Numbered from the stretch's first letter, positions 210-47,326 are shown. The stretch: DNA of 64,000 bases from Pocillopora damicornis (GCF_003704095.1 NW_020843860.1:1-64000); one strand, 5' to 3'. Notes: a model not told the origin generated them from the sequence alone. Program-made: numbers and translations.

Positions 210-1863
210 ATGGCGGTTGTCGATACCGAAAATAAATCAGATTTAAGACAACTTTTCCAAAATATATCACCATACTTTACTCCAGAGGAATCAGAACATG
301 TTGTACTGTCATTTAAACAGAATTATGGGGGGAAATTCAACTCTCTAGACGATTGCGATCTGCTGAAGTGTTTTCATCTTCTTGAAGAGAATGGGTATGT
401 ATCTGAAAACAACCTCAAACTAATCGAAGACTTCGTTGCTTTGAAATCGAGAGGAGAAGAACTCATTAAGGACGCTATGAAAACTTTTAAGGCCTCTCGT
501 CCAGTAAAAGCTGATCCAGAGAAGAAATTGCAGGGACGGAACGATGAAATCACGAAAATCAACCGAAAACTGGCATCAAAAGATTCTGCAGCTTTAAACT
601 TGTTTGGATCGTCTGGTTTGGGAAAGACAAGACTTGCTAAGGAAGTTTGCTCACAATGGCGTGGAACATATCATGTCTTTGATCTTAGAGAAGCAAAGGA
701 TATGAGAGCGATTTATTACAACATTCTACATTCTCTCGATCTAGCTGTTCCAGTTGGTTACATTGAACTAAAGAATGTTGTGGCAAAAGTTCAAGAGAAA
801 ATAAGAGAGTTGCAGACGAAAAGGGAGGGACATGGTGTTCTGTTTATGCTGGATAACGTGGATCGATTTACCGCAGGACACGGAAAGGACGGAAAGAACT
901 TGAAAACAGCTTTTATACAATTTTTAGAAAAGCTTCTAGAAACCAAAGAAAAAGGGTCTCCCTTGAAACTTTTACTTACATCAAGGGCTCAGTTAAAAGA
1001 TTCCAAAAAGGTGGAAGATTTTGAAGTCAAGTCCCTGAAAAGATCTTTTTCGGAGAAAATCCTCTTTCCTAAGGGGATGAATGATGTCCAACCCCACCAG
1101 ATGGATAAATTTGTTAATACCACCAAAGGATCTCCCCTTTTTCTAGAATTACTGGATCCTATTTTGCGACAAGGACGGAAATCTGTTGATGAACTCATCG
1201 CAAGACTTGCACTCACTCCAAAGAAATCCAAAGTGGAGGAAGATGCCTCAGAGAAGCCATTCGATTTTGAGGACGATGGAGTAGACATGGGTCAGATATC
1301 GGTAGTGAGAGAAACATTCGACACACTTCCCACTGAAAGTTTGAAGGTATCTGCAGTAGTAATCTCCTTGTTTCATGGGCCTTTCTCTGTGCCAACAGCT
1401 GCCAAAGTTCTTGGTATTGACCAGTCAGAAGCTATTGCTCAGTTAGAGGGTCTTGCAGCCAGTCGAATCATTTTTGTAGTTGACAAGGAAGCAAAAGAAA
1501 GGAAGTATGACATCCATCCACTCTTACAGAAGTATGCTGACAGTATCAAGAGTCAGGAAAACTTTCTTGCTCTCTATCTGGAGGCAAAAGCGCGCTTTTA
1601 TGAACTCTTCATGTCCAGGATGAAGGAAATTGCCAAACTCATTGAGCCAGACTATGTCAGAGCATTCCATTTATTTGAGACAGACAGAGGAAACTATGAG
1701 TTCACTGTTGACATATCTTTGCAACCAAAATATTTCAGTGTTCCAGGTGAATTCCATGAATATACTTTGATTGCCTCCCTTTTTGATGCAATGCTAAATG
1801 AGAAGAAAATAATCAAGGTGTTTCATAACTGGGCTGAGAAGTGCCAAGATGATGGAAAGACAG
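210..1863 (+). CDS. Copy A exon 1: DED-like + NB-ARC ATPase + winged helix
   Basis: ORF 192..1925; ATG at 210; donor CAG|GTACAG at 1863/1864, same position as in the paralogues (..DDGKTG|). Confidence 0.9.
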
Positions 1864-4800
1864 GTACAGTACTTTATAATGAAGTTTTGGTCATGCAATT
1901 ATTAATTCTTTTAAAAATTTTATGAACTGTGATTTGTAGTTTATTCTTTATACACATATATCTATATATCTGCATCTATATATATATCATTCTACATCTG
2001 CTTATCTGTACATCAGTATATCTCCATACTGGTCTCTGAATAATTCTTAAGGTTCTTAAATGGAGAATTTGTTAAAAAATCAAGAGCTTCTTTAGTTGGG
2101 GATCATTTCCTTTATTCCTGTGACCTTGATGTTTATTTATGATTCATGGATAAAATTGNNNNNNNNNNNNNNNNNNNNNNNNNNNNNNNNNNNNNNNNNN
2201 NNNNNNNNNNNNNNNNNNNNNNNNNNNNNNNNNNNNNNNNNNNNNNNNNNNNNNNNNNNNNNNNNNNNNNNNNNNNNNNNNNNNNNNNNNNNNNNNNNNN
2301 NNNNNNNNNNNNNNNNNNNNNNNNNNNNNNNNNNNNNNNNNNNNNNNNNNNNNNNNNNNNNNNNNNNNNNNNNNNNNNNNNNNNNNNNNNNNNNNAAGAC
2401 TAGCTAAAAAATTGCTCTGAATATCCTCTCACATATCAACCCTTCAACTCCTAAAAGTGATTAATATCTAATTTCTCCTTACAATGTCACTCCTGAATCA
2501 ATCATGAAGGTTATGAGAATATATGAACTGATCACCAATTAAAGTAGCTCTTCATTGCTGACCAAATTCTCCCTGTCAGCACCTTAGGAAACGTATAGAG
2601 AACAGTGTGGAGAATATGGATACTGATGTTAAGGTAATTCAGTGTAAAGCGTTAATGACTTGAAGTCCTACAATTTAGTCTTTTGGAAAATTGTTCACTT
2701 TGGGAATCCACTTGCAACTGTTATTAAATGAAACATCTGACTGTTAATTCTTCTGCTCTTACAAAATTATAAGCTCCAATAAATATTTTTCATTTTTAAG
2801 TTGCAAAACTGTGGTAATAAGATTACATAATTGACTTGTTGTGTAACATTTTTAGGTTCTCTCATGCGAGCACAGTTGAAATGCCGGGAAGTAAAGCAAG
2901 TTCTTGATGTCCATGGAACAGAGAGAGCATTTGAGGTACTGATGACAGCTTTCAGTTCACTGGAGAAAGTCAACAACAAAACTAGTGATTATTTTATGCT
3001 CACCAAAGGACTCTATCTGTATTGTGAAGGTGAGATCCTTTGGAGAAATGGAGACTTTAAGAAAGCACTTGAATGTTTGAAGTCATCCTTGGAATTCTTT
3101 AAGGCACTGCCAGAGGAGCACACTGATCTTGCGAGGTGCTACAATGCTATTGGAAACTGCTATTCGAGTCTAAAACTACTTGAGAAGGCACTTGAGTTTT
3201 ACAACAAAGCATATATGACTCAAAAGAAAGTGGCAGGATCTGAGCATCACTTTGACATTCCAATTTACAAGAATCAAATTGGAACTGTTTATGTTGGTCT
3301 AGGAGATTACAAAAAGGCTACCAAGTGTTACAAAGATGCCTTGGGCCTTTTGAAGGAACTAAACCTTTTAGATTCGTGGGATGAAGCTCACTTTCTGAGA
3401 AATCTTGCTAATGCTTACATTCACAGAAAGGAGTATAAAAAAGCAACTGAACCCGCAGATAGGGCTTATAACATAAGGATGAAGATTCTCGAAAATCACC
3501 CACTAACTGTGCAAAGCATATACCAGAGAGCAGTGATTCTGTCATACTTGAATGAAGATGAGAGATCCTTGCAGCTCCTTCTTGAAGCATGGAAGATGGA
3601 GAAAGCACTTGATGCAGGAAACCACAGTCCAGTTTGGCGAGATATTATTGTTGGTGTCGAGACCTCATATGATAATCTAGGGAAAGGAAACCAGAAGAAA
3701 GGATTTCGAAAAGAAGCATTGAAATTTTGTGAACATCTCTGGGAAGAACGAAAAGGCTCAAAATTGTTTTGCTTTGATGATTTCGACAAAGAAGTAATTG
3801 ATACTATTTTGGAACTTCTTAGCAAGAAGAAAGGCAAATACATTGTTTACAAAGTGGAAAAGGAACAATTTCAGAAGATGTATAGTGTTAAGAAAGAAGA
3901 ATTTCAAGAAAAAGCTGACCAGACCCAAAGAATTCTACTGCACTCAGGTAAAAGCCAATGGCATTGCAAGTTATTCCTAAATTAGAGTGTTGTAGGCATT
4001 TTGCTGTTAACCCTTTATACCCTAACATCAGTCTGTATATTCTCCATAGTGTTTTTATACAAATCCTTAGGTGCTAACAAGGAGAATTTGTTTATCAATC
4101 CAGAAAATATTTTGTCAATGATCATTTCCTTCATTCTCATGACCTTATACTGTCTGAAGCAGGGTTTATATTGTTAGGAGAAATTAGCTCTTGGTCACTC
4201 TCAGAGGTTAAAGGATAAACCCCTTAACCCCTAAGAGTGGTTAGGAACTATTTCCTCCTATCAGTGTCACCCTTAAAACAATCATTGAGGTCATGAGAAT
4301 AAGGGATATGATCACCAACTAAAGAAGTTCTTAATTGTTAAACAAATTCTCTTTGTCAATACCATAGGAAATGTATACAGAATGTTATGGAGAAAATGTA
4401 AACTGATGTTAAGATGTAAAGAGTTAATAGCATTTGGTGGGAAATGCATTGTCCTAATGGTTAGTGTGCTGGACTCCAGGTCAAGAGATCATGGTTCAAG
4501 ACCTGGCTGATCTAGTTATTGTGTTGTGTTCTTGGACAAAATACTTTAGCCAATTAATTCCCAAGATCTCATCAATAATTCTCCTTACTGTCTCCCATAC
4601 AGTTCTTGTGATGTTGGTTTGGAGAATTTGGTATTGGATCATCTTACAATCCCCTAACTGATATTTTTTGTTATTCTCATCACTTGTCTGCTTGATATTG
4701 TTTTGATATTGTAAGGAGAAATTCTGTCTTGGTCACTCATGGGAGTTAAAGGGTTAAATTACTCTGTCAGTGCCTCTTGAGCCCCATTCAGGACTACAAA

Positions 4801-7800
4801 TAGATACTGGCAAATTTTTAGGCAAGCCTGCTGAAATGCTGGGGTGGTAAACTTTCAATAGACTGGCATCCCATCTAGGGGGAAGTAGTAATACTCCCAA
4901 TCACTTCATGCTCAGGAAACCAGGATAAACTCCAGCTGGATGAGCCACTTTGACTCTTGGACTGAGTCTCACAAACCCAAACTGACACACATGTTAAGTT
5001 TACAAAGCATACAAAGTATAAAGTTGCATTTACACACTTGGAATTGTAGAGACACAGAGGTAAATTAAGGGAGATTAATACTGGTAATAGGACCAAGTGG
5101 AGTCCAATTTGTCTGTTCTCAGACTAGTGATTAACAAAATTGGACAACTATGAAGGGGGAGTCCGATTTGTCAATCATGAGTATGATTACCAACAGAATT
5201 GGATGACACGAAGTCCAGTTACCAATTAATCATGACTGTTTGAATTTCCAAAAAAACAAACAAACAAAAACAAATACACTTAGGACAAACATCTCCAAAA
5301 TTGACAATGTTTAAAGTAAAAAATTCTTCCATTTAGGAAGTTCCCCAGTTTCTTTTTTCAGGGTAAGTAGTTGTTTCTATGGTTATGGTGATCAATTTTG
5401 TGATTGGTGGATTTAGCTGAGGGAGTGGACTTTAGTTAGTATGATTGACTGCTTCAACTGTCTGCTAATGCACCAATCATGTTTGAGGCATGCAGTTTTG
5501 GTAGGAAATGCAATTTTTGCAATGCTATTTAAGGAAAACAACTATTTTTAGCCTCTGAGAGGGAAAAGGTGCCTGATGCCAAATCAGCAAAAGGAGATGA
5601 TGCAGAGGAGGAGGAAGAAGTTGTGGTGGAGTTGTCCGATGAAGAAGATTCAAAGCCAAACCCTAGAGACAGCAAAAAGATTGTGGTCAGGAGGTAATTC
5701 ATTTTTCTATCTATGATTTTTCTTGTTGTGCTGGGCTCTTACAGAACCTTCAAAGGGGTTGTAAAGCAAAGGCTAATGCTCTAAATGTCTATTTGCTCCT
5801 CAGAGATGAGATAACAGACAAGGGAGACACATGGAATCTACCGGAGGCTGGTGCATTTATCACCTTTTCTCCAGGATTTCTGAAAGAACCCTTGTGGGTC
5901 TCTTGTTCCATGTGGAGTCCTAGATCCCTCTCTCCTCCCATAGGCAGTAATGAGCTCTTGGTGAGTAATTTGATTGAACTATCTTATGAAGGCCCACCAA
6001 CTCTAGAGTCTGGGGAAGCTGCTACAGGATGCATAACCATGGGTTTGTTGCACAGTGCCTCTGATTTCAAGGGATATGAAGTAGTTATTAAGAAACTGGT
6101 TGACCAAGAAAACAATGAATGGGAAGATTTGGAAACAAGAATCATGTGGAATTCAGCAGGTATTTAAACTCAAGTTATTAAAATCATTTATCTACCCGAC
6201 TGGATATTTGTTATTATCCCAGCTATAAATCCAAAGGAAATTTTCTCCTCATACAGCTGTAGGTGCAATAATGATGATTATAATATGGCAAGGTAGTCCT
6301 GAGGTAAATCTTAGTGTTCTGATTGGTTCTTACTTGGTCAGTATTTTGCCATACAGAGTGTTTCCATGGAAACAGTTGTAAGCTCTGTATTTTTTTTTAG
6401 TTAAAGTAAGCAAATTCAAAATGGAAAAGTTTGGTCTGATTGCCATATGATAAACTACTTACTATGGGAACCTTGTTTTCAAAATACTGGATTTATATAG
6501 AGCAAAACTTGTCTTTATATATTGCAGACAAATTCATTTCCACAGTACAAGTGTAGATCCCCAATTGAGACTTATATTCCAGGTGTGCAGTTATCAAAAG
6601 CCAATTCATTTCTTTGATTGAAAGGTTAAGAGTGAGAATGCATCTGACAGCAAAGCTACAGATCGTTTTTTATTTTTTTAGAGAGTCGATGTAATACCCC
6701 TGTCTCTCTTTCCAAAAGGTATAGGTGACTTTTCTGGCAGGAGCTCAGGGGAGGGCCTAGTTTTTAATATGGAATCCCGCTAGGTACCCTTCATGCTGAA
6801 GAGTCAACTAAATTTACTAAATAAATGAATTTTTCATATTCTTTCTTGAAGAAATGAATCCAGCTGTTATGGACTGCCCATATGCTGAAGCGACTTGCTC
6901 TGGAATCTGCTTTACCTCCTTTGCGGTTATTTGGCGCCTGAAGTCTTTTGTCTTTTGGAAGACAAAGAATTTGAGCCCCGAGTTTACTTGCACAGTGCCA
7001 GACTATCCAAATGTCTGTGTTTCAATCCCATGGAATTCTGTTCCTGACAACACAGACTTCTCTTTAACTCTAAAGGTAACTAAACTTAGTGTAGGTTTCA
7101 AATAAGTCAAACCATAGCCACCTATAATGTCGGTGTCATAAATATTTGTTGTTCCTTCTGGATCACAGGTACAGGAGGCACCAAGCACCGATGGCAGAGT
7201 TGGAATCTTGTTGGGTCCGGTTCTTCACATTTCGTGCTCACATGGAATAACGCTCTTGGAGCCAGCAAAAATCAACCTTCCTCTTGCACTTTTTAAAGGT
7301 GATAGAGAATTGTTGGACATGCACTCAGGTCAGTGGAGGATATTTCACTTTCAGCAGGAATGGAGAGATATCACAGATCGGTTGGAGATGTCAGTTGCTA
7401 TTACAGATGGAATAGTGAGATTCAAAGTGAAAACTTTCTGCAGGTAAGTAAAGGTTCTCATTGGTTAAAATTTAAATTACATTAAAAATGTTCGTTGATC
7501 CCGGAAGTGTTCGTGATGTTATCACTTATAGACCAAGTAATGGTCAACCTCATGCATACTGTACTACTACGACTATGCTGAGAAAGACGAAAACGATAGC
7601 GTTAACGACCACGACGTCAACAAGGACGAGAATGACGACCATGACATGGACGAGGGCATGGACGAAGGCAAGGACAAAGAAAAATTGATAACATGGACAA
7701 GGAGGAGGGACGAGGAAGAGGAGGATGAAGAGGACGAGGACAAGGAGGGAGACGAGGAAGAGGAGGAGGAGGAGGAGGGGAGGAGGAGGAGGGGGACAAG

Positions 7801-9316
7801 GAAAGGGACGAGGAGAAGATGACGAGGACGAGGAGGGGGACAAGGAAAAGGGCCGAGGAGGAGTAGGAGTAGGGGGAGGACGAGGATGAGGACGAGGACT
7901 CAAACTGGGACGACAACTGTGACATTGACAACGAAAGTGACTATCACCTTGACGGTGAAGATTCCTTAACAATAATAATGAAAGTGTCAATGATAGCGAC
8001 ACATACAACAGCAGTAACGATGACTTTGGCATTGTCACCGATAGTAGCCATAGCAATCTATTTTCACTATTTTCCCTACGGTAGTAAGTTATTGACGAAC
8101 AGATTACTTTCCAAGCTATCGGTAATTTAAGAAACTAACCACCTGTGGAGTGCTTGTCTTTAATGTTAGTAAAAGAAGATGTTTTTTCGATGATTTTTAA
8201 AATGATGCCTTATCGTTTTCTCTCAGATTTTTGCCTTTGTGGGTGGTTGCTAATCTTGCTGGTGTTGATGCTGGTGATGTCTCTGATCTGGCCAGGAGAT
8301 CGATGAAACAACGAGCTGGGTTTTTAGCTTGCATGTGTCGAGATGTTGTACCTGAAAGATACTTGCTGAAGCTATTTTGTTTCCCACTTCATTTGAAATC
8401 CAAAGTGAATAAGAATATGGTAAAGTTGAATTACGATGTGATCTTTCAAGGAGATGGAAACTCGAAGAAACCTCTATTCAACGAAGACGAAACGTCTGTT
8501 GCTCTTTCAAAAGGACTGAAGGTACACGAAGGAGGAGATACTGACAACCTCTCCTTAACGTAAGTGTTTGTTGCTCATATCATGATTACTACCACTTGGT
8601 GCTGTTTTCTGTTTTCTATTTCATATTATATAGGGTCTCAAGCAGGAAACGTCTGCTGTAAAATGTTGTTCCAGACCCCCACAGCAAATCTGCACTCCAA
8701 TGATTCCCTTCTTAATCTTTGAATTTAACCTTAGACAAAATCGTTTAGGAGTACCACCGCCAAATGAAGTAAGATAAAGAGATGCTAGGCAATTAGGATA
8801 TAGAGATTACGTTTAGAACACAGGTAGAAAGACCAGCAAAATATTCAGAATTTATCGGGAATCAATTATGACAACATCACTAATGGTCCGTCGGGTGGAA
8901 ATCCCATCAAACAGCTGTTGGTGTCATTCTGTTAGAAGCAGCAACTTACCTGAGTAGACTTACGGTAATGGATTTTAGTTAAAAATGCGCCACAAAGAGA
9001 TACAAAAAGTGGGCATAAATTACCAGAGCAACTCGCAAGGCATAAGCTCAGTTTGTTTTTCTGCAGACAGATTTCCTAATTAATTTTGGTCGCAAGAGTC
9101 TCCGTTGGATTGCTTTTACATTAACGGAGAATGTATTATTTTCTTTCTTGTGTCAGGTTTTATGATGATGGAGAAGACCAAAATGATGTGTTCGTCACTA
9201 TTGAAGATAAAAGTAACATGTCAGTAGACTTCTTGAAACGGCTTAACGCCGAGGATAGGACAGACCATGAATTGTTATGTAAAGTTCGCATTATTATTCG
9301 AGGATCTCCATCGCAG
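210..9316 (+). CDS. NLR-like receptor copy A (multi-exon): DED-like - NB-ARC/STAND - TPR - acidic linker - ZU5-ZU5-UPA (PIDD-like); probably continues into the GT4 exon at ~9813-11040
   Basis: Phase-compatible GT/AG exons read by hand: 210-1863, 2856-3947, 5552-5693, 5804-6159, 6852-7075, 7169-7443, 8227-8559, 9157-9316. Motifs: DED-like LxxLEENGYVSENNLKLIE, Walker A GSSGLGKT, Walker B FMLDNVD, sensor-1 LLLTSR, GxP (KGSPL), MHD-like YDIHPLL, TPRs (LARCYNAIGNCY), ZU5 (LGPVLHIS..EPAKINLPL). Confidence 0.85.
2856..3947 (+). CDS. Copy A exon 2: TPR repeat region (short form)
   Basis: ORF 2831..3985; acceptor TTTAG|, donor CAG|GTAAAA; repeated TPR consensus (A..Y..IG..Y...G.Y.KA..CY..AL). Confidence 0.9.
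4007..4428. mobile_element. Two adjacent TTAA-MITE copies in opposite orientation
   Basis: TTAACCCTTTA..GGTTAAAGGATAAA followed directly by CCCCTTAACCC..GTAAAGAGTTAA, same internal sequence as the 37817 element. Confidence 0.65.
4445..4950 (+). mobile_element. tRNA-headed SINE interrupted by a TTAA-MITE (4547-4757)
   Basis: A-box-like CCTAATGGTTAG and B-box GGTTCAAGACC; the SINE body (TGTGTTGTGTTCTTGG..TACTTT) resumes after the MITE (ACTCTGTCAGTGCCTCT..CATCCCATCTAGGGGG). Confidence 0.6.
7560..7910. repeat. Purine-rich (GAC/GAG)n low-complexity tract in an intron of copy A
   Basis: Degenerate ACG/GAG triplet runs; lies between the donor at 7443 and the acceptor at 8227. Confidence 0.85.
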
Positions 9317-9812
9317 GTATTTCTTCTTGTTTTTTAGCTGCATTGATCCGGCTTCTCAATTTGCAGTAGAAAGGCATAGCAACGAATGTAAAATATGCCG
9401 GTTTAACACAGTCGTCATCTTAATTAATTAGCGGCAACCATGATTAGAAAAGCTACTTCTAAGAAGTTAGGTTGTTTTCCTCACTCATCCCCTACTCGAT
9501 CACAAAGGTCATCCGTACGTAAGTCCTTTGGTACAGATTTGACGTTGCCAAAATGACACACCAAGGGCTTAAACTTCNNNNNNNNNNNNNNNNNNNNNNN
9601 NNNNNNNNNNNNNNNNNNNNNNNNNNNNNNNNNNNNNNNNNNNNNNNNNNNNNNNNNNNNNNNNNNNNNNNNNNNNNNNNNNNNNNNNNNNNNNNNNNNN
9701 NNNNNNNNNNNNNNNNNNNNNNNNNNNNNNNNNNNNNNNNNNNNNNNNNNNNNNNNNNNNNNNNNNNNNNNNNNNNNNNNNNNNNNNNNNNNNNNNNNNN
9801 NNNNNNNNNNNG

Positions 9813-11040
9813 TCTTCAGATATAACTGACACGTCACAAAGCGAACGAGGAACTCGAGTTAATCCAAGAGGGCCCGACTCAAAATTGAAAGTCTCTCTTT
9901 TGGCAAGTGAGTGGAGCTCATCAATGGGAGGATTGTCCACCATTAACAGACACCTCGCCATTCAATTGGGCAGGCACGCCCAAGTGGAAGTCACTTTCCT
10001 TGTCCCACCCTCTAGCTGCTCTGAAGAAGAGATAGGATTAGCACGAAGCTGCAATGTTGCCATCAGGGAAGTACAGAGTCGTACAGGTTACGACCTCCTT
10101 GACTTCCTGATAACTCCGCCGGAAGACCTGGAAATTGATGTAGTAGTGGGTCATGGTCAGAAGCTTGGTAAACAAGCCCAGTTTATCACAAGATCACACG
10201 GTTGCAAGTGGATTCAGGTAGTTCATACTTCACCTGAGGATCTAGGAATGCACAAAAAGTATCCCAAGGCGATTTCAAAGGGTGGGAAGAAGAAAACAAT
10301 CGAAGTAGAGTTGTGTAAACAAGCAGATGCTGTTGTCGCAATTGGACCTACTTTAAAGGAGACCTTCTCAGCTTATCTTCGCCCCTGTGGCAAACAGCAA
10401 GACATAATTGAATTGACTCCAGGCATCTTCAGTGAATTTTCGACCATAAAACATGCTACAGTGGACAATAAAAACTTTAGGGTGTTAATCTTTGGTCGGA
10501 GTGATCGAGAGGACTTTGCAGTTAAAGGATACGATATAGCTTCCAAGGCAATAGCCGAACTGAGCGACCCTACTTACCGCCTGATCTTTGTGGGTGCACC
10601 TGACGGAGAAGAAGAGGAGATTAAAGAATATTTGCTTCAGAATGGAATTCCAGATGGCCAGCTAACTGTGAGAAAGTTTGTACAAAGCAAAGAGGAATTG
10701 GAAGAATTGTTTTGTGAGGTGGATCTGTGCATCATGCCATCAAGAGTGGAAGGGTTTGGCTTAACGGCCCTGGAGGCTATGTCAGCTGGTCTTCCCATTC
10801 TTGTCAGTGGCTGTTCTGGATTTGGAGAAGCACTTTGCACTGTGCTACTAGGCGAAGAAGTTGTTGTCAGTAAATCTGAGGATCCCAAGGAATGGGCAAA
10901 GGCAATCGCCGGTGTCCGCCAGAAGGAAAGATTACAGCGACTTCGAGAGATTCAACAGATACGGTGTTCCTATGAAGAGAAGTATGACTGGGAAAAACAG
11001 TGTGAAATTCTCGTGAAGAAGATGTGGGACATACGTTATG
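9813..11040 (+). CDS. GT-B fold family 4 (Glycos_transf_1-like) glycosyltransferase exon
   Basis: ORF 9885..11075; SEWSSSMGGLST N-terminal motif, KGYD, and EX7E donor-binding motif PSRVEGFGLTALEAMSAGLPIL; donor G|GTAAGT at 11040. The frame is open back to the gap edge. Confidence 0.9.
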
Positions 11041-13412: not shown

Positions 13413-13512
13413 NNNNNNNNNNNNNNNNNNNNNNNNNNNNNNNNNNNNNNNNNNNNNNNNNNNNNNNNNNNNNNNNNNNNNNNNNNNNNNNNNNNNNNNN
13501 NNNNNNNNNNNN

Positions 13513-17856: not shown

Positions 17857-17957
17857 NNNNNNNNNNNNNNNNNNNNNNNNNNNNNNNNNNNNNNNNNNNN
17901 NNNNNNNNNNNNNNNNNNNNNNNNNNNNNNNNNNNNNNNNNNNNNNNNNNNNNNNNG

Positions 17958-35786: not shown

Positions 35787-37428
35787 ATGGCGGCAGTTGA
35801 AACTGCACAGCTACAACAATTCTTCGAAGACATTTCTCTTAAGATTACCCCGGCAGAAACGGAAAATGTTGTGCATTCTTTTAAACGGATATATGGGGGG
35901 AAGTTTAAGTCGTTGGAAAGCCACGATCTGTTGAAATGTTTGCAACTTCTTGCTAAGCAAAGGTATGTAACCGAAAACAACCTGAAACTCGTAGAAGACT
36001 TCGTTGCTCCGAAATGTAGCCAACAGAAGGACATTGAGGAGGCACTGAAAAGTTTAAAGGCCTCTCGTCTGATGAAAGCTGATCCAAAAAAGGAATTAAA
36101 AGGACGGAGCGATGAAATCACGAAAATCAATAGAAAACTTGAATCAAAAGATATTGCACTTCTAAACTTGTTTGGGTCGTCCGGGATAGGAAAGACAGAG
36201 CTTGCAAAAGAAGTTTGTTCAAAATGGAAAGGGATTTCTCGAATTTTTGACCTGAGGAAGGCACAGGATATGACAGCGATCTATCACAACATGCTTCATT
36301 CTCTCGAACTAGCTGTTCCAGCCGGTCGTGTTGAGCAATTGCAAGAGTATGTTGTAGCAAAGGTTCAAGAGAAAGTGAAAGAGCTGAAAGATGGGGAACA
36401 GCCTGTTCTTTTTATGCTGGATAATGTGGACCAATTTACCGCAGGGAAAAAAGAAGAGGGGAAAAGGTTAAAAAAAGCATTCCTACGCTTTTTAGAAGAA
36501 CTTTTAGAAAGTGAAGAAAAAAGACTTCCTTTAAAACTGCTTCTTACTTCAAGCACTAAGTTAGAGGAACTCAAAAAGATGGATGATTTTGAAGTTAAGT
36601 CTCTTGAGAGATCTTTTTCAGAGAAAATCCTCATCCCTGAGGGAATGACTGATGTAAAAACCCATCAGAAGGATCGTTTAATAAGCATTGCCAAAGGAAT
36701 CCCTCTTATTTTGAAAGGACTGGCTGCTATCTTGAGACAGGAACGAAAATCTGTTGATGATCTCATTGCAAGCGTCACTGCCTCTTCACAGCAATCTGAA
36801 GCAGAGGGAGATGCAAGAAGTAGTGTACTCACTTTTGAGCAAGAAGGAGTAGACATGGGTCAGATGTCAGTGATTCAAGAAATGTTTGATACACTTCCCA
36901 CTGAAAGTTTAAGGGTATCTGCAGTAGTAATTTCCTTGTTTCATGGACCTTTCTCTGTGAAAATGGCTGCCAAAGTTCTTGGTTTTGATGAGGTGGAAGC
37001 CATTGCTCAGTTAGAGGGACTCGTAGCCAGTGAAATAATTTTTGTTGTTGATGAAGAAGCAAAAGAGAGGAAGTATGACATTCATCCACTATTACAAAAG
37101 TATGCTGATAGTATCAAGAGTCTTGAAGACTTTAATACTTCTTTCCTTGAGGCAAAGGAACGCTTCTATGAACTCTTCATGTACAGGATGAAGAAAATTG
37201 CAGAACTCATTGAGCCAGATTATGTCAAAGCATTCCATTTGTTTGAGAGTAACAAAGCCAACTATGAGTACACTGTTGAGATCTCCTTGCAACCAGAATA
37301 TTTCAGTGTTCCAGCTGAATTCCGTGAAAATGCCTTGATGGCATCCCTTTTCATCGCAATGCTGCATGAGAAACTGATCCCGGTCTTTGGTTCCTGGGCT
37401 GAGAAATGTGAAGATGATGGAAAATCAG
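35787..37428 (+). CDS. Copy E exon 1: DED-like + NB-ARC
   Basis: ORF 35787..37592; GSSGIGKT, FMLDNVD, KGIPL, YDIHPLL. Confidence 0.9.
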
Positions 37429-40400
37429 GTACTTTTTCAATAATAAATTCTAATTTATTCAGTAATTTTCCCCACTGTCTGCCATACTATTTTTATGATG
37501 TTGATATGGTGAATTTGATTTTAGATCAACTAATAATTCCCCAATTGATATTTTCTTTATTCTCATCACCTGTCTGCTTGATATGGTATTAACATTGTAG
37601 GGAGAAATTCTGTCTTGGTCACTCAATTGGGAGTTGAAGGGTTAATGCTTGAAAATTTTAAATTTCAATTAAAATTACACAATGCATATTGATCTTTGTA
37701 AGGTAGAAAGTTCTCTTATTTTCCCAAATGTGATTGATGCATTAGCTGCTTTATTTTTCCAATGATTATTATCTAATCTAAGTGTAATTGACAGACAGTT
37801 GACTGTAATCTGACAGTTAACCCTTTAACTCTCAGATCAAATTTGTAATTCTCCTAAATGTCAACCATACAATTCTTATAATGTTAGTTCAGAGAAGTTA
37901 GTATTGGATCAACTTATTATCCCCAAATTGACATTTTTCTTTATTCTTATCACTTATCTGGTTGACATTGTGTTGATGTTGTAAGGAGAAATTCTGTCTT
38001 GGTCACTCATGGGAGTTAAAGGGTTAAAGCTACCAATCATATTAAGTCCACTCAGCTAAATTCATCAATCACAGAATTTATTAAAATAACTGATAGCAAC
38101 AACCACTTCCCTACAAATCTGGGAAATTGTCTAAAGGAAGGAATTTTTTACTTTAGAAAATGTCTCTCTGGGATATATTTTTCTCACAGTCAATTTTGAC
38201 TTATTTCCACAGTAATTTTATTTTTCGGAAATTACAATGGTTATGATAAATTGGTAACAGGACTTTGTCCAATTCTGTCTGTAATCATACTGGTAAAAAT
38301 AATTAACAAATCAGACTCCCTCTGCATAGTTGTCAGATTTTGTTTATACCTTGTATGATTACAGACTTAATCAAAACTATAACAAAATTCTTGAACTTGA
38401 CTGGTTATGACCAGCTCAATCTGAGTACTAATAAGTAGTGTACATGGCATGCTTTTAATTGGACAGTGTAATAGGACTGTTAAGGGGTCAGNNNNNNNNN
38501 NNNNNNNNNNNNNNNNNNNNNNNNNNNNNNNNNNNNNNNNNNNNNNNNNNNNNNNNNNNNNNNNNNNNNNNNNNNNNNNNNNNNNNNNNNNCCATGGCTT
38601 TCCTCTAGATTGAGATGTTGGCAATTATGTTTAGTGTCAGAGTAAGGAATTGGCATGGCCCCCATCTTGAAAGGGTTAGGGAGCATTATATGGGGGACAC
38701 TAAAGCAAAGGACTTCTAAGTTTTTCTGCTAAGAATCCATCAGTCATGGCTGAGATCGAACCCTCTTCTCTTATTTGTGAGTTTGGAAAAGCCTCATAAG
38801 TCAGGCCCTATTGAATTGCGTAGCTAAAGGGGCAGGAATAGGGGTAGTTATGTTTGTTATTTTATTTCTAATTTGTTTGCTTAATCATCTTTACATAGGT
38901 TCCCTTGCTCGAGCACAGTTGAAGTCTTGGGAAGCCAGACAAGTTGCAGATGTTGTTGGGACTGAGAAAGCATTCAAAGTATTGAAAGAAGCTCTATTTT
39001 CAATGGAGAGAGTTGAAGACAAATCTAGCGAGTCCTTTAAGCTCACCAAAGGCCTTTACTTGCACACTGAAGGAGAAATTCTCTGGAGAAACAGAGACTA
39101 TAAAAAAGCACTTGCAAGCTTGACGTTGGCCTTAACATTCTCTGAGCCGCTGCTGAAAGAACATACCGATCTTGCAAGGTGCTACAATGCAATTGGAAAC
39201 TGTCATCTAAGTCTGAAACAGCCCACAAAAGCGCTCGAGTTCTTTGAAAAAGCCTACATGATGCAAGAGAAATTAGCAGCCTCTAAGAACCACTTCGACT
39301 TGCCAATGTACAAGCAACAGATTGGAGCGGCGTATGATCATGATGGCCTGAAAGATTATGAAAAGGCAGTTGAATGTTACAAAGATGCACTGGGACTGCT
39401 GGAAGATCTCAAACTCCTAGGTTGTTTGGATGAAGCACACTTCTGTAGAAATCTTGCAAATGTGCTTATGTTTCAAAAGAAATATTCAGAGGCAGTCAAA
39501 CCTGCAGAAAGGGCTCTCAAGATTAGGATGGATCTTCTAAAAAATCATCCACTGACTGTGCGTAGCATTTTTCAGCGAGCGGTTCTTGAAGTTAATCTTG
39601 AACATCCAAAAGAAGCCTTGAAGTTCTTCCTTGCAGCATGGGAGATGGAAAAGTCACTCGGGGCGGGAAACCACAGTGAAGTATGGCGAAAGATTATTGA
39701 AGGTGTCAACGCTATGTGTTACCGCCTGAAAGAAAAACGACAGTGGGAAAGATTTAGGAAAGATGCCTTTAAGTTTTGTCAGCGATTCTGGGGAGAACAG
39801 AAAGTATCTGCACAATTCACCTTCAATAAGTACAACAGAGAAATCATTGATGCGCTAAAAGAGTATGCTATTGATAAGAAAGACAAACATGCAGTGCGTA
39901 AGGAACAACTTTGGTTCTACGAAGGGATGTGCAATGTCGACGAGAGAGAGTTTCAAGAGACGTTTGAACTGGAAAACGATAACAATATCCTCCTTGATCT
40001 GTTGAAAGAACGAGATAGGCTCTTAACCGATGTTATACGCCTTTGTTCTGAACTTCACGAGCGTGAGAAGCTTGCAAAACACAAAGAACACAAGGTGGCT
40101 TTGTACAAAATGTGTCTTGTTAAAGCGGGTTTTCTTGGTGACAAGGCAGATGGCTTGGACAAAGCGTCATTGAAGAGGAAGGTAGAGGAACTGTACAAAG
40201 AGATAGGAAAAGAACGAATCATCCTGGAATTTAGAGAGACATTGTTGGCTTCTTGGCAAATGCAGTGGGAAGAAGGAAAAACCAAAGAAAAGGCGGAGAA
40301 GATCGGCGTTGAAAGAGAAACGACAATCGATGGCATTCTCCAGTTGAGCAAAGAGCTGATGAAAGATACTGTGTACAAACAGTATGGACAAGAAGCGTTG

Positions 40401-43400
40401 AGTTTTTATGATGAATTATGGGAAGTAAAGCACGCTTCCTTGAAGAATCCCGAAATGAAGAGGTTCCTTCTTAAAGTAAAGGATTTGGCGTCGTCCATCG
40501 GTGATTACAGGAGTAAAAAACTCTATGAAGATGCATTAAAGGTAGGAGTTTACTCATGTGTCAAACAACCTTAAACGTCAATGCTGCACGATTTCTTGTA
40601 CGCTTTGCTCAGAGACAGCGAAGGAGCTGTTCGTACTAGCTGGTTCTTTGCAGGTATCGTTTACAATCTACTATCTTTTGTAATTTGTTTTGTTTTTACC
40701 CTTTTTTTGGTCCTGTTTTGGTTTTTGGAGAAATTTCACTTGGTACAAGTACCTTCGGCATCAAATTTACCTTACAGAGTGAGACACCAATAATTTTTCA
40801 GGAAATATTTTTGCATCTATGTTTTTTTTAGTGACTTACAACTTTTAAATCAATGATTTGAAGAGGCAATTAAGGATACTTATATTTAGAAAAACTCAGT
40901 TGAGTTTGAAATATTGTTCCTTTCTTCATGAGTCTTTGTACTTTGTTTCCAGGTGCTGAATGAAACTGGGAAACATCCAGGGGCCATATTGAGACCAAAA
41001 GGTAACACGCTTAGTTTAGATAATAACATGATTTCAAGCGCAATTTGCTGTTAGTAGCAAGAGTAAATTTTTCAAAGACAACAAAACTGCAAGAGCCTGT
41101 AGGGCAAGTGCAAAAAGTCTTTGAAAAATTTGCAAGTGCTTATTACACCAAACTGCGGGAGAAATCATGTTATTATATGTGAATAATGTACTTGAAGAAA
41201 CATTACAAGATGTCAAGACAGACGAAATTTTGAAAGCGTGCGCGCGCTATTTGTAATTTGCACTCGTGTTACATGAGAATGCACTCGTTTTCAGCCAATC
41301 AGAAGCGCGTAATTTTTTCATGAATGTACATTATTATTCTGTTATCTGAGTATTTACTTTACCCATAAGTAACTTCTGTTTTCCAGTATTGTATCTCAAT
41401 TGGTTTTATATATTTAGATACCTTGAATGTTGTAGTATGAAATTCTGAAACAACATCGTGCTTATTTTTACTGAGCTTTATATCGACTTCTGCGAGTGTT
41501 ATGACTTCGTTTGGAAATTGATAACAATAGTACCTTGAGTCTTAAGTTTATCAGAATTTCAAGTCTTGTAAAAATTCTTTTCTGATCTCTTTAAACAACA
41601 AAAAATTAAGAGAACAATAGTGGAGAACAATTTGAATGTGTTGAATTCAGAGACATAGGGGTTCTTGCTTTATTCCAGAAATCTCGGCTTTTGTTTTTCA
41701 AAGGTGCATTGCCATTGGTTCCAGTTGGACATGAAGCTGTATTTAGAACCTTGTCCCTCTGTTTTTACTTTTATTTATTTTGTTTTCCATTAGCTACAAG
41801 TTCCACTTCTAAATCGAAGAGAGAAGAGAAGGATGATGAAGAGGAAAAAGAGGAAATTGAGATTGAACAGAAAAAGGAAGAGCTCGAAATTGGCTTAGAA
41901 GAAGAAACTGAGGTTGGGGCAGAGATGGAACCCTCTTCTGAAGGTGTTCAAACTGATGAGAGAAGCATCATTTTCAAGTAAAGCCATGTTACATTTATTA
42001 TTTCAATAGACATTAGTATTTAGTTAAACAGCGGAAAGCGTTCAAAGTGCGCTCTGATTGGCTACTCAAACTCAGAATACCTTTGCTATTCATCTCCAAG
42101 CAACTCGGATTAATTATATGGATGTGCGTGCTCTGATTGGTCGTCGTCTCTCGCTATACTCAGCCATTGGGAGAAACTTTATTGTCAGAGAAAAACTAAA
42201 TGAGAAAGCGGGATGTTTGTAGCTTTTATCATTGTTTCAAGAGCTCACAGTGCACATAGCACCCCTTCAGTTCAGCGGGTGCTTTTCTCTATAACCTGAA
42301 GTTTAGAAAATTGTAAATATAAATGTTTCAATACCCTTACAACAAGAACACTGATGTAATATCATATTATGTTTATGGTATACAACACCAAATGGTATAC
42401 AAGGTGTGCAATTCACTAGATATTTTTTCTTTCAATTCACAGAGACACTGTAACAACACAAGGTGGCCGCTGGGACTTGAGGAAGGCAGCAACTCACTTG
42501 GTATTTCCTCGTGGTTTTGTTGCTGAGGACACTATATTGACTCTTTTTCGATTGAAATCCTCACTGTGTTCTCCTCCTCTTCAGCCAAATGAAGCCATAG
42601 TCAGCAATGTTCTTGAATTATCGGCAGACACTCCTGAAAGTCTTCTATTCAATAAAGAAGTCACGCTTGGAATTTCGCACAGTGCGTTGGACCTTAAAGG
42701 ATATGAAGTGGTGATTAAGACCTTGATAGACAGAGAGAGAAATGAATGGAAGGACGTCGAGCAAACAGTTGATTATAGATCTCTGTCAGGTAAGCATTGG
42801 AAGTCATCGTGAATTAACCATGGTAACTTGTGTTCAAGCAATAAAGTGGCCTCTCTCAAAAATTGTTCAAAAGTCAACTTGTCAAAGCGTGTCGATCTTT
42901 AACAGTTTTATCAATGTTCTCCGTTTATGTCGGTGGTTTTTTTTACTTTTCTTCTCCCCATTATTTCAGATAGTTTGATCAGTACACTTACCCACACTGT
43001 GTACAAGTGCATATTACTGTTTGAAAGGGAACCTTGCACTGCAATTTTTTGTTTCTGTAGGGAACGAACTGACTGTAAAACACAAACAGCAAACAAAAAA
43101 ACGTAAGAATATGTACCTTGATTCTCCCAGGGCGATTCTTATATAAATGTTGGTGATAGAGGACATCTGCCTGTAAACGACATTTTCAGGGAGAAGAACA
43201 CACAATATACCGTCAATCTATTAGATCTTGTGGTTGTTGGTTCGCCAAACAGGTTCTTGTGGCGAAAGGTGGCTACTTATGAAAAAAGTGTTGGCTGGGG
43301 GTGGGGGGGGGTCCCATTGGAAGAAGGAAGCTGGTTGGAGAACGAAGTAAGCGGTTTTTAATAAACATGTAACAAAAGGATATCCCGTATTCACGATTTG

Positions 43401-46400
43401 TCAATTGACTGCCTAAAAATTATTTTTGCAGATCTTCAGAGAGTCTATCACGATAATTTTCCTGACTATCTTCTTCCTGTTGCTGAAACGAAGATTATCC
43501 AGTGTTCTACCTTCGTTGTGGTTTGCCGTCTCAAGTCCTACATTTTTACGATAACATCAGAACCGTCTACCATCTCTTTGCCTGATTTCCCTTTGGTGAA
43601 GATTCATTTTCCACCAAATTCGGTCTCGTCCACTGAAGAATTCAGTGTCAGAGTAAGTTTTCTTATGTAGGGAAGAAACAAATTCGACGATGCAGTTTCA
43701 TTGGCTCAATATGTTCATCGTGTGAGTGGTCTTTTATCTGTGATGAATCATCTCGTCAGTAATTATTGTTACAGTTGTGTTTAATAAATGTAATGTTATT
43801 AATATTTATCATCGACTGAGTGATTAACTGTTTAGCTCATGCAACTCTTAGGTACAAGAATATATTTGAAAGGAATTGAAAGGCAAGGAAACGCTAGCTG
43901 GCCCCATCATAAGAATATCTTGCAACAAGGAGATTAAGTTTCAAGAAGCTGTCACCGTCCAGCTGCCGTTGTCCTTGAGAGACACTGAGCAGGACGCTGA
44001 ATCATTGGGTATTTCTGATTTGTCCTTAGTCCGTGCTCGAGTCCTGTTTCAACCATCTAATGGTACACAGCGAGAGTGGACTGAAATCACAGATCTTCTC
44101 GATTCCCCTCCGTGGCTGGATGGGTTTGTTATCAAATTCAACGTGAGACACTTCTCAGGGTACGTCAGTGCATCTCTTTACTTCTTTACTTTTTGCTTAC
44201 CACATCTGTCCCACTCTAAGTGGTACCTTTTCACATTTTTAGTTTATAAGCATTTTTGTGGAAAACCTGTTTGGTAGCCAAGGCTGTTAGATGTGAATCA
44301 ACTGCAAAACATTTGAATGAACAGATTGAATATTGTATTAAGTCATTTTAGCAGTGTTGAGATTCTCGTCCTCTTTTAAATCCTTACTGTTTTTCAATTT
44401 TGTTTCGTTTTCCTGTTGTGTATGCTTTCGTTTTTGGTTTGCGTTTTCGTTTATTTGGTAGAATGTCATAAGAAATCTTGATTGTACAATTTTGAGGAAC
44501 GTGTATTGACATTGGACTGTGTTCCTTTCCCCTTTTTTCTCGAAAGATTTTGGACCTGGCTCGCATCACCATTAACCCAAATTGCCCGTGCATGGAATAC
44601 GGAGAGTGTACGGCATTCAGTCGTTTTCACAGCTACTGTTCCAGTGCATACTAGACTTAACACCGATGTAGATCTGCTTTTGTACTGCAGTCCAAATGAC
44701 AAGAAAAGAGAACACATCGATGATGAGAAGATGGTTTGGTTGATAGAAGAAAGTGCATGGTACAGCATGGTCACTGATGATCAAGCTTACGTCTTCCTTT
44801 CAGGGGATGCAGCGCAAGTAGTCAATAAGGAACGACTCAAGAATTTTTTTCTCAGGTAAATTTAAAATAGGTTTGCTGAGTGTCTGTTAAGTGCTTATAT
44901 AGAAAGAGACAGACACTACGCCATGGAACGAATGGCTTTCCAAGAAATCTCCGCCTTGTAAAGTCCTTACTACAAAATAGGTTGTAAACGACTATGAATG
45001 TATGAAAGTCATAGACTTGAACTGCGGATAAAGACGTGAATTTGAACCCATGATCTCTGCGGTGCAGCGCTCTACCATCTGAGCTTACAAGCCAACTGGG
45101 AGCTGGTCATTCAACATAATGACCAGCTCCCAGTTGGTTTGTTAGCTCAGTTGGTAGAGCGCTGCACCGGTATCGCAGAGGTTATGGGTTCAAATCCCAT
45201 ACAGGCCTGAATTTTGTTCAGGCCTTATATCCACTACTGCTCAAGTAGTGTTCATTACTGCGAAAATCGCTAATACATTCAAAACAGATTGTCGTCATTC
45301 ACATGATCTCTCTCTAAAATGAAGATAATTTTCTATTGGTATCATTTTCTAGCACGTATATTTTTATTATATTCCACTCAAGTAAACACTGCTTTTCACG
45401 CTCCCTAATTGACCAGCTCCAAGTTGACTAAATAAATAAATGACTTGGGACAAAGTTTGGGTTGGCGACACAAATCAAATGAAGTTGTTTAATCTTCCCA
45501 GCCTAATATTGTAGAGCAAATGTCCAAGTTACCGATTGCTGTCGAGAATTATGAAAGGAACAACGCCCTCGTAGTTAAGCTAGTTTAGTTCTGTTAATAT
45601 ACCAAAAAACTGGTTGGAAATATAACTCCTGACTCGAGATGTTGTCTTTTCAGCTGCTCAGAGCTGAATGGTACTTGCTGATCACCTCCAAACCAGCCAA
45701 TCAGCGCGTGCGAAAAGCATTATTTATCTGTGTGGTTATACTTATTGTTAATTATCTAATTAGAATCCAATGAAGGAATTTCTTTAGTGAAAAACTGATG
45801 GAGAAAATGAAGCGAAAATCTTCGACTATTTCCAGTTATCCCTGTCTTTGAATGCTGCTATTTCCACAGGTTTGATAGAGAGGCTTCTAATTTTAGACGT
45901 CTGGCGGTACACGTGGTAAACAAAGGCGTCCTAACGATAGAGTTCTACAAAAGTAAAGATCGGAGTGATGGAAATATGATTGGTGTACTGGATATGAAAC
46001 TGCCTCCCGCGCTGGACCTTGCGGTGAGTATCTTTAGTCAGCGCCGTACAATATCATTTGTTGGTAATAGCTGTCCCTATCTCCTCCCCTTGCCACTTTC
46101 TAGAACAAACTAGGACCTTACACAAATATCTCTACAAAGAGTACAAACAGTTCAGAGCCACTTTAATTTTCAAATATATGGGTGGATCAGAGCCATTGGT
46201 ACATACTTTTTTATTCAACTTAACAGAAAGGTGATTGTTGATATGTTGGTTGCAATTCGTTTTTGACTTTTAAAGCACATAAAGGGCTATGACTAACATG
46301 CTGAGTAATAATTGGACATTCTTTTCACACAATTCTCTGGGGAACACATGGAAAAATATGTTAGTTTTGATTTGTTACAAAAAAAAGTGTTTCAGTAATA

Positions 46401-47326
46401 CAGAAAACATTCTGAGTTACTATTAGGTAAGGTGACTGTTGAAGTGTGAAATAACTTTAACTTGCAGAGTACTCCTGTGAAGTTTCTAGGCATTCCCGTA
46501 GATGACAGAATACTTCACGAAGCTCCTTTGGCCGAAATCCTGGCAGCATGTAACGGGGTGTTAGAGAAAATAGGCCGGTGGGATATTCATGAAAGTCATT
46601 TGCGAAGCAACCTCGATGAATTTCGCAAAAAATGTAGTTTCTACGGAGCTCTTGCGAGCTTACCCGTAGAGTATCAACGAGAGTGCTGTGATGCAATCAT
46701 TAGCTTTCTGAGGGAGCACAGACGAACCGGTTTCGAAGGCTTTAAACACATCGAAGAATATCTTATTCATGGTAAGTATGTAAAGCAATTAACTTTTTTT
46801 TCCCATTTATATATCAGTAATTTACCTTCAATAATACTTCCGAAGCTTCGTTAGAAAGTTAAAACTCACGGGAAACTTTTTAAAGACATGATTCGACATG
46901 ACTCATGCCATTCTAGTTTATTGTGTTGCATCCGTTGACTATGTTTTTGCACGCTACAGTCGACATATCTGCAAAAGACAAACGGCAATCACTTTTAAAA
47001 TGAACCTCGTTTATTCTTTCATTTGTTGCTGAATCCATCTGCGTTTGCTCTAGACTCACACACACGTAGCTTTTGACCACACTAGCGCACTCTTTTTCTT
47101 TACTGTTTTATGTGTTTTCCGGTTTGTGTTATATCCAGATGAGGGCCTTTTTTTCCCGGCCTTTCCACGGTACTCCATTCTGTAAATTGTAGCATTCGGG
47201 TTTTTAATTAAGAAATGTCACGGCAAATTTGCTGACACCCATCTGCTTACTCCTTAGAAGTGATCCCAGCTTGCTATTACATAACCTACATTTTTTTTTT
47301 TAATTTCCTTAGCAAAAGATGCCTGA
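35787..47326 (+). CDS. NLR-like copy E, most complete: DED-like - NB-ARC - TPR - acidic - ZU5-ZU5(HFS)-UPA - helical/CARD-like; contains an in-frame TGA (possible pseudogene)
   Basis: Exons 35787-37428, 38899-40541, 40953-41001, 41794-41977, 42443-42789, 43432-43652, 43852-44159, 44547-44855, 45870-46023, 46468-46771, putative 47313-47326 followed by AATAAA; all junction phases compatible; TGA at 43867-43869. Confidence 0.85.
37817..38027. mobile_element. ~210-bp TTAA-flanked MITE (piggyBac-like), best-preserved copy
   Basis: TIR TTAACCCTTTAACTC...GAGTTAAAGGGTTAA; related copies at ~2437-2655, 4007-4217, 4218-4428, 4547-4757, 22025-22210, 23775-23975, 37455-37645. Confidence 0.8.
38899..40541 (+). 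CDS. Copy E exon 2: TPR + helical region
   Basis: ORF 38811..40574; acceptor CATAG|, donor AAG|GTAGGA. Confidence 0.9.
41030..41335. repeat. Interspersed repeat, second copy at ~28390-28710
   Basis: Shared AAGTCTTTGAAAAAT..CAAGTGC.TATTACACCAAA and GCACTCGTTTTCAGCCAATCAG..GCG..TAATTTTTTCATG in non-homologous introns. Confidence 0.7.
44993..45282. mobile_element. Palindromic tRNA-derived repeat
   Basis: tRNA-like arm 45136-45208 (TAGCTCAGTTGGTAGAGC; GGTTCAAATCC) facing its own reverse complement at ~45042-45110; related copy at ~58600-58870. Confidence 0.75.

Follow-up and report, generated by a model that had tools for sequence, protein, structure and literature searches.

Does a coral receptor gene that encodes NB-ARC and TPR domains end at its repeats, or does it continue into a ZU5 module of the kind found in NLRP1 and PIDD1? 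This question is raised by a 64,000-nt stretch of the Pocillopora damicornis genome (GCF_003704095.1 NW_020843860.1:1-64000; hereafter the window), which is positions 1-64000 of contig C495 in the assembly that we searched (234 Mb, 4,393 contigs). We found seven copies or fragments (A-G) of one receptor family in the window by blastn and tblastn searches with copy E as the query. The long open reading frames (ORFs) on both strands consist of STAND NTPase exons and TPR exons, and the 64 kb (G+C content, 38.6%) contain 11 runs of N. Copy E, on the plus strand at 35787-47520, is the sole copy that is contiguous from its first to its last exon. Our preferred reading, which we consider probable, is that paralogous coral STAND receptors form a tandem and inverted cluster in the window, that this family carries a ZU5-ZU5-UPA-Death (ZZUD) cassette behind the TPR array, with a predicted cleavage mechanism at an HFS motif, and that the copies in this window are degenerate.

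Splicing of the TPR and ZU5 exons

An earlier reading of the window, made from the DNA sequence alone (the sequence-only reading), had joined the TPR exons to ZU5 exons through an acidic linker in copies A, D and E. The RNA evidence on this junction consists of contigs assembled from four runs of four studies, which were aligned to 40250-46249 with each joint shifted to its GT..AG; the runs with the sequence are labelled coral or marine metagenome. The copy E joints, all of them GT..AG, are 40541/40953, 41001/41794, 41977/42443, 42789/43432, 43652/43852, 44159/44547 and 44855/45870. All four runs show the joints at 40541, 41001, 42789, 43652 and 44159, and those at 41977 and 44855 occur in two runs each. 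A single 2,060-nt RNA contig, with one end deep within the TPR exon, takes in a 49-nt mini-exon and the acidic exon and extends into the first ZU5 domain (ZU5a), overlapping contigs carry this chain on through UPA, and a loose RNA end at 46023 exactly matches 46468. Several intron bins of copy E have zero RNA depth; therefore, these contigs represent spliced RNA and not contaminating DNA. The exon phases of copy E, joined in a script, are all consistent with open frames, and the domain calls given below were obtained for individual exons, by reference or from database orthologues, and not from a joined copy E model.

The TPR-to-ZU5 fusion in copy E is real and RNA-backed, and the proposal of one transcript holds for this copy. 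For copy D, the same junction is supported by the retained mini-exon, linker donor and ZU5a acceptor, splice signals included, and for copy A by colinear exons. The only gap inside the copy E gene (38492-38591) is intronic, lying between the NB-ARC exon (end, 37428) and the TPR exon (start, 38899), and 38592-55499, which spans the TPR exon through the 3' end, has no gaps. The copy A gap (2159-2395) is also in the NB-ARC/TPR intron, with 2396-9577 (TPR through UPA) gap-free, and copy D is gap-free over 22311-27322 (TPR through the ZU5a start). Short database matches to ZU5a (P0001-P0009) were set aside, since they are genomic ORFs with intron flanks and are uninformative on splicing.

Domain identities and relatives

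The NTPase of the family belongs to the NB-ARC clade of STAND NTPases, as PF00931 scores 27.6 bits in copy E and 24.9 bits in copy A against a cut-off of 23.5, and its Walker A motif is intact (P-loops GSSGIGKT and GSSGLGKT). NACHT scores in E and A (24.0 and 21.9 bits) are under the cut-off of 26.7 and no LRR was found, the repeats being TPR_12; thus, the copies are not canonical NLRs. The TPR exons of the window match TPR_12 with E-values down to 1e-26. At the N-terminus, two paralogues independently match Pfam DED (E=0.0018 for A and 0.0089 for E), both under the gathering score, and a profile of seven sequences from this genome's own copies has DED2 of cFLIP as its top match (E=0.014). An AlphaFold2 (AF2) model of the first 110 aa of copy E, with a predicted local distance difference test score (pLDDT) of 74, resolves five helices. 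Nearly all of its high-probability Foldseek matches are DEDs (PEA-15, cFLIP, caspase-8 and FADD; probability 1.00, E ~0.1), and its comparison with PEA-15 gives a template modelling (TM) score of 0.65 and a root-mean-square deviation of 2.3 A. This DED-like domain begins at residue 1 in the orthologues. We accept the N-terminus as a predicted DED-type death fold, the fold being supported by the model and strict sequence membership being marginal.

In the tail, exon 5 of copy E alone passes the Pfam ZU5 threshold. Single exons 6-10 of copy E and the tail exons of copy A have no Pfam match and were identified through orthologues instead. A search with the ZU5a exon against 1.84 billion representative sequences led to a Montipora protein (P0013; 1,716 aa) that is colinear with copy E exons 1-10 and then continues into a Pfam Death domain. 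Searching with P0013 in turn yielded RefSeq models of 1,700-1,990 aa with NB-ARC, TPR, ZU5 and Death domains from Montipora and five Acropora species, as well as a Stylophora 'Nephrocystin-3' of 1,785 aa. The nearest proteins that bear a species name are scleractinian. The orthologues P0013, P0230 and P0238 (1,716-1,889 aa; Montipora and Acropora) are all colinear with exons 1-10, and each has a Pfam Death domain at its C-terminus. The order of two ZU5 domains followed by UPA is found in the window, where the second ZU5 (ZU5b) and UPA are recognized by colinearity with the orthologues and the ZU5b frame of copy E is broken by a TGA; the C-terminal Death domain is found in the orthologues and not in the window. 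The full architecture of the family is DED - NB-ARC - TPR - acidic linker - ZU5 - ZU5 - UPA - (~100-aa helical domain) - Death, with Death as the ancestral C-terminal effector. Pfam, orthologue colinearity, and profile and AF2 matches all agree with the domain order that had been proposed up to UPA. The earlier picture of a receptor with effectors at both ends suits the orthologues, which have Death behind the DED-type N-terminus, but no Death domain detectably survives in the window.

A profile of 37 family sequences, compared with the sequences in the PDB, matched an ankyrin-B ZU5-ZU5-UPA-DD construct over the whole module (E=2.6e-38). The AF2 model of a 628-aa homologue (P0011; pLDDT 80) gave Foldseek matches to the ankyrin structure 4D8O (E=9e-30), other ZU5-ZU5-UPA structures of ankyrin-B and ankyrin-G, UNC5b (1.7e-10) and the FIIND of rat NLRP1 (2e-6), so the module of this homologue is predicted to fold as ZU5 and UPA. 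The tail is a ZU5-ZU5-UPA(-Death) unit, the whole of which is homologous to the ankyrin/PIDD-type supramodule. In other coral proteins, this unit stands behind a GT4-conflict glycosyltransferase (P0088, P0226 and P0225) and behind CHAT (P0227); therefore, it behaves as a shuffled C-terminal cassette. The earlier idea that the receptor had been assembled from different parts does not apply to this tail.

Among known systems, the coral models are the nearest. Those of Montipora foliosa (P0230), Acropora palmata (P0238), A. digitifera (LOC107327669) and Stylophora pistillata (P0253), named 'uncharacterized protein' or 'Nephrocystin-3' and taken here together with orthogroup OG0000273 (Noel et al. 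2023, PMC10236652), are colinear exon by exon over the DED-like domain, NB-ARC, TPR, ZU5, ZU5, UPA and the helical domain (36-64% identity), with HFS at the end of ZU5b. Unlike the window copies, they end in an intact Death domain; here the Death exon of copy E is apparently decayed and interrupted by stops after an earlier TGA, and that of copy A was not found. The ZZUD of ankyrin-B, -G and -R (ZU5N-ZU5C-UPA-DD, 4D8O) is the best match in sequence and structure over all four domains, but ankyrins have VSA at the HFS position, bind spectrin, carry ankyrin repeats and have no STAND NTPase.

PIDD1 (LRR - ZU5 - ZU5 - UPA - Death) shares the tail, the HFS at the ZU5b/UPA junction and an upstream repeat-type sensor with the coral family, but it has no NTPase or DED, its repeats are LRR and not TPR, and both of its ZU5 domains have HFS, where ZU5a here has QCS or ECS; this likeness rests on established knowledge and on the ankyrin and NLRP1 structural matches. 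NLRP1 and CARD8 (FIIND, that is ZU5-UPA, then CARD) also present a STAND NTPase and repeats followed by ZU5-UPA and a death-fold domain, with a predicted cut between ZU5 and UPA. The coral family differs in having NB-ARC rather than NACHT, TPR rather than LRR, DED rather than PYD, two ZU5 domains, and Death rather than CARD, and it is not a member of NLRP1/CARD8 by any sequence test. To our knowledge, among the systems characterised so far, the placing of a ZU5-UPA 'function-to-find' module after a STAND receptor is a speciality of vertebrate NLRP1 and CARD8, where it underlies sensing by 'functional degradation'.

The composition of the coral proteins has been catalogued already. As summarised in PMC4083563, Hamada et al. 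(2013) described DED/CARD/Death - NB-ARC - TPR proteins in tandem clusters in Acropora; these resemble the N-terminal two thirds of our family (DED, NB-ARC and TPR) and its clustering, but that summary does not mention a ZU5-UPA-Death tail. Partner domains of cnidarian NACHT include ZU5, Death and glycosyl transferase (PMC8260672), and 'NACHT-Zu5' is a shared early-metazoan architecture of unknown function (PMC12909245). Supplement file 16 of Noel et al. (2023) tabulates genes with 'NB-ARC,Tetratricopeptide_repeat,ZU5', and the supplement also lists an orthogroup with TPR, P-loop and ZU5 (PMC10236652). With colinear fused models in three coral genera (Montipora, Acropora and Stylophora) and this tabulation, the suggestion that the architecture was undescribed falls. 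Kaur et al. (2021) predicted PIDD-like autoproteolysis for other invertebrate ZU5/FIIND fusions and described the coral GT4 expansion (PMC8195603), and a 2024 survey of NLR evolution (PMC11508797) does not mention a FIIND-like coral tail. No paper in our literature search presents coral NB-ARC-TPR-ZZUD proteins as an analogue of NLRP1 or PIDD; within the literature searched, the mechanism has been neither proposed nor tested.

Damage to copy E, predicted cleavage and alternative readings

The sequence-only reading had considered ZU5-ZU5-UPA to be fully traced in A and E. Copy A does have colinear ZU5a, ZU5b and UPA exons. In copy E, the acceptor 43852 makes the sixth codon of the RNA-supported exon 7 (43852-44159) a TGA (43867-43869), which lies in ZU5b on the 5' side of HFS and where copies F and G have AGC. 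The predicted copy E product thus breaks off in ZU5b after 1,367 aa and lacks HFS, UPA and Death. No RNA base difference was seen at 43867-43869 among the 40 of 70 listed differences, and the RNA contigs probably carry the TGA. Next after the exon 10 donor comes the acceptor 47311, the frame of which gives four residues, TGA and TAA, about 55 residues and another stop. By eye, the following sequence (47312-47520) aligns to the Death exon of the orthologues, with an 'AK..' start, 'KIK..IDAI' and the pattern C..A.L..Y....S.AT, and it is probably a decayed Death exon. A six-frame search of the contig with Pfam Death (PF00531) at E<=0.01 gave no match. The ratio of nonsynonymous to synonymous substitution rates (dN/dS) between copies E and G is 0.12-0.13 in the ZU5 exons; therefore, these tail exons have been coding under purifying selection for most of their history, and the damage to copy E is recent, allelic or an assembly error. 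Copy E looks like a transcribed, correctly spliced, recently disabled copy.

A possible explanation, to which we give a substantial but minority chance, is that the cluster is mostly pseudogenes and assembly debris, that the fused copy E RNA is non-functional and prone to nonsense-mediated decay, and that there is no working receptor here. The TGA in ZU5b and the three stops in the Death-like exon of copy E would fit this explanation, as would the five of seven copies cut by gaps, an order that no single gene explains, and the contig's lack of a detected Death domain. However, exons 1-6 of copy E and all detected exons of copy A are open, dN/dS is 0.12-0.3, the fragmentation is explained by the 11 gaps in 64 kb and not by decay, and a truncated 1,367-aa DED-NB-ARC-TPR-ZU5 product could still signal via its DED.

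In the last strand of ZU5b, copy E has RHFS and copies F and G have KHFS; the corresponding tripeptide is HFS in the NB-ARC-TPR orthologues and RFS in a Porites ZU5-Death family. PIDD1, UNC5CL, NLRP1 and CARD8 cleave themselves at HF/S or SF/S in the ZU5/UPA junction, and ankyrin, which binds spectrin, does not self-cleave. The coral tail might instead be a non-cleaving supramodule like that of ankyrin or UNC5, which would be a closed unit, autoinhibitory or scaffold-binding, would mask Death until the receptor opens and would keep HFS as a structural remnant. The best sequence and structure matches are indeed ankyrin ZZUD and UNC5b and not PIDD or NLRP1, ZU5a has no HFS, copy A has TFC instead of HFS at ZU5b, and some family members have HFT, HFC or HLS. 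On the other hand, the F-S pair (HFS or RFS) is conserved in at least 90% of the 37 family sequences, exactly where the final strand of ZU5b meets the first of UPA in the P0011 model, the position at which ankyrin aligns VSA and at which the self-cleaving proteins just named are cut. We regard the non-cleaving supramodule as rather unlikely, and the family as consistent with one putative PIDD-type self-cleavage site, judged at the level of the motif.

The analogy with NLRP1 and PIDD is reasonable but unproven, self-cleavage being suggested by the conserved HFS. Under our preferred reading, ZU5-ZU5-UPA-Death is one inherited ankyrin/PIDD-type cassette fused behind a TPR sensor. TPR and NB-ARC would form a ligand-gated oligomerisation switch, and the N-terminal DED might recruit DED-bearing caspases. 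The second ZU5 may cut itself at HFS, as PIDD1 and the FIIND of NLRP1/CARD8 do, and the UPA-Death fragment, non-covalently held and releasable, could then seed a second signalling platform based on Death domains. We offer only tentatively the wider idea that scleractinian NB-ARC-TPR receptors are a convergent counterpart of NLRP1, in which a constitutive cut at HFS would leave UPA-Death docked until the sensor is activated or destroyed by a pathogen; a PIDDosome-like caspase platform would follow, the DED would provide a second output, and the tail would be a shuffled 'release cassette' that is also placed on GT4 and CHAT protease heads.

Several points weigh against the preferred reading. The link between exons 1 and 2 crosses assembly gaps in both E and A and is drawn from phase-compatible GT/AG sites and colinear orthologues. 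RNA support was obtained for copy E only, and none for A or D. In exon 7, the AG at 43871-43872 is a possible in-frame alternative acceptor that would skip the TGA, used by none of the RNA contigs, and the TGA at 43867 may itself reflect an assembly error or a single allele. For the Death relic at 47312-47520, the statistics are weak (tblastn with P0238, E=0.033; hidden Markov model of the local family, independent E-value 0.044), and Pfam found no match in it. At the end of ZU5a, QCS or ECS stands in place of HFS, which leaves at most one PIDD-type site. The evidence for the putative autoproteolysis is a tripeptide motif and fold homology, and, among solved relatives, the non-cleaving ankyrin is nearest in sequence and structure.

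It is highly improbable that each NB-ARC-TPR gene is followed by a distinct gene made up of the ZU5 exons, with the fusion a read-through or contig-assembly chimera: the RNA evidence does come from assembled contigs and not single reads, and many database entries for the module are ZU5-Death-only proteins, but identical GT..AG joints in four independent runs, a conserved 49-nt mini-exon that is sensible only as a connector, continuous reading frames and RefSeq models with the same fusion in three coral genera refute this alternative for copy E.

There is thus RNA-backed evidence that reef corals splice a tail equivalent to that of NLRP1/CARD8, with a conserved HFS, behind DED-bearing NB-ARC-TPR receptors. 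This gives a testable case of whether the release of a death-fold fragment by autoproteolysis has arisen repeatedly in animal immunity or is ancient. It also calls for caution in annotation, as RefSeq names such proteins 'uncharacterized' or 'Nephrocystin-3' and fragmented assemblies easily split them into an 'NLR' gene and a 'ZU5-Death' gene.

Other copies and neighbouring sequences

The features of all copies are collected in Table 1.

Table 1. Exons and fragments of the receptor family in the window (positions counted from its first nucleotide)
Feature	Coordinates	Strand	Remarks
E exon 1	35787-37428	+	DED-like domain (~35787-36080), then NB-ARC NTPase with P-loop GSSGIGKT; donor GT at 37429
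E exon 2, TPR array	38899-40541	+	Pfam TPR_12 E=7.5e-21; acceptor 38898 phase-compatible; 3' donor joint in 4 RNA runs
E exon 3, 49-nt mini-exon	40953-41001	+	Flanked by GT..AG joints in 4 RNA runs; conserved in copy D
E exon 4, acidic linker	41794-41977	+	RNA joints; E/D-rich translation
E exon 5, ZU5a (first ZU5)	42443-42789	+	Pfam ZU5 E=5.4e-7, 30.2 bits (cut-off 21); RNA joints
E exon 6, ZU5a end (QCS replacing HFS) and ZU5b start	43432-43652	+	RNA joints; 49-58% identity to P0013, P0230 and P0238
E exon 7, ZU5b	43852-44159	+	In-frame TGA 43867-43869; HFS at 44149-44157; acceptor 43852 used in 4/4 RNA runs
E exon 8, UPA part 1	44547-44855	+	RNA joints; colinear with UPA region of P0013 and P0230; family profile aligns to ankyrin-B UPA
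E exon 9, UPA part 2	45870-46023	+	RNA joint 44855/45870; loose end 46023 matches 46468
E exon 10, ~100-aa helical domain	46468-46771	+	36-39% identity to P0013 1504-1608 and P0230 1664-1768; donor G/GTAAGT at 46772
E probable decayed Death exon	47312-47520	+	Stops at 47324, 47327 and 47495; weak homology
A exon 1	210-1865	+	DED-like and NB-ARC; 65% identity to E exon 1; NB-ARC 24.9 bits, DED E=0.0018
A TPR exon	2849-3943	+	Shorter than the copy E TPR exon
A tail	5566-8527	+	Acidic 5566-5694; ZU5a 5793-6221; ZU5a/b 6914-7066; ZU5b 7208-7441 (ends TFC, 7433-7441); UPA 8225-8527
Copy B	13514-14197	-	Initial 227 aa of exon 1; cut by gap 13413-13512
Copy C	17963-21913	+	Exon 1 second half 17963-18823; TPR exon 20252-21913; gap-cut at both ends
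Copy D	22311-27320	-	Exon 1 end 27165-27320; TPR 24076-25746; mini-exon 23461-23505; linker 23118-23219; ZU5a start 22311-22453
Copy F	27624-30249	-	ZU5b 29965-30249 (KHFS); UPA 29057-29344 and 27624-27761
Copy G	31375-34091	+	Exon-6 equivalent 31375-31590; ZU5b 32579-32863 (KHFS); UPA 33418-33744 and 34005-34091

The domain encoded by exon 10 is single-copy in this genome. Its position between UPA and Death is conserved in acroporid orthologues, and it occurs twice in the Acropora muricata protein P0255 (351-432 and 1042-1143). It has no match in Pfam, the PDB (profile search) or the ESM Atlas, and a local hhalign comparison of its family with Death and DED alignments returned no match, a comparison without power as the Death-versus-DED control also failed. 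A divergent CARD is a conceivable identity for this domain.

Copies C and D form an inverted pair with 87% identity, and F and G another with 88%, introns included. A haplotig interpretation of the two pairs was ruled out because the identity is only 87-88% even with introns; therefore, they are paralogues. Gaps cut the exons of B (at 13513), C (17957), D (27322 and 22311) and G (34093), and the scaffold order C, D, F, G is incompatible with any single gene. Copies B, C, D, F and G are gap-cut pieces, probably of two inverted paralogues (C+G and D+F), the contigs of which would have been interleaved by scaffolding.

The tail of copy A is colinear with residues 1271-1616 of the Stylophora protein P0253 (45-54% identity), and no Death exon of copy A is detectable before the next gap. 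Beyond this gap (9578-9811), an exon for a GT4-conflict glycosyltransferase lies at 9813-11040 on the plus strand (PF20706, E=1e-80). Its frame extends open to the gap without a start codon, and a consensus donor G/GTAAGT lies near 11040, so that the exon looks internal; the gap hides whether it belongs to copy A. In coral relatives (P0088, P0226 and P0045), GT4 is N-terminal to ZU5-Death and does not follow UPA. A second GT4 fragment (17716-17853, minus strand; 52-62% identity to P0088 and P0045) is alone on a 142-bp contig between two gaps.

A second cluster of the same family is found on contig C1651 (80001-130000, loci L005-L009) and is equally gap-ridden. Several DED-NB-ARC exons lie there, on both strands, along with ZU5a (115148-115501), ZU5b (118241-118450) and a Death exon (123975-124184); no intact copy can be demonstrated in this region, which is full of gaps.

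An element of about 1.2 kb (34194-35408) precedes the first exon of copy E and recurs at 85-87% identity around copy B in either orientation (11745-12965, minus strand; 15076-16225, plus strand), copy B being flanked by an inverted repeat (11715-13412 versus 14620-16283). Inside the copy E introns, repeats at 41050-41450 and 45040-45250, where the depth of RNA contigs reaches about 12,000 with many loose ends, are probably transposable-element fragments; 45040-45195 is a near-perfect palindrome that recurs at 58649-58778. Downstream of the cluster (52872-64000, plus strand), translations indicate unrelated genes, with EGF-like exons at 52872-53111, 56610-56816 and 57538-57774, a ShK-type cysteine motif at 53858-54049 and the start of an astacin-type HExxH metalloprotease exon at 63724-63999 (plus strand).

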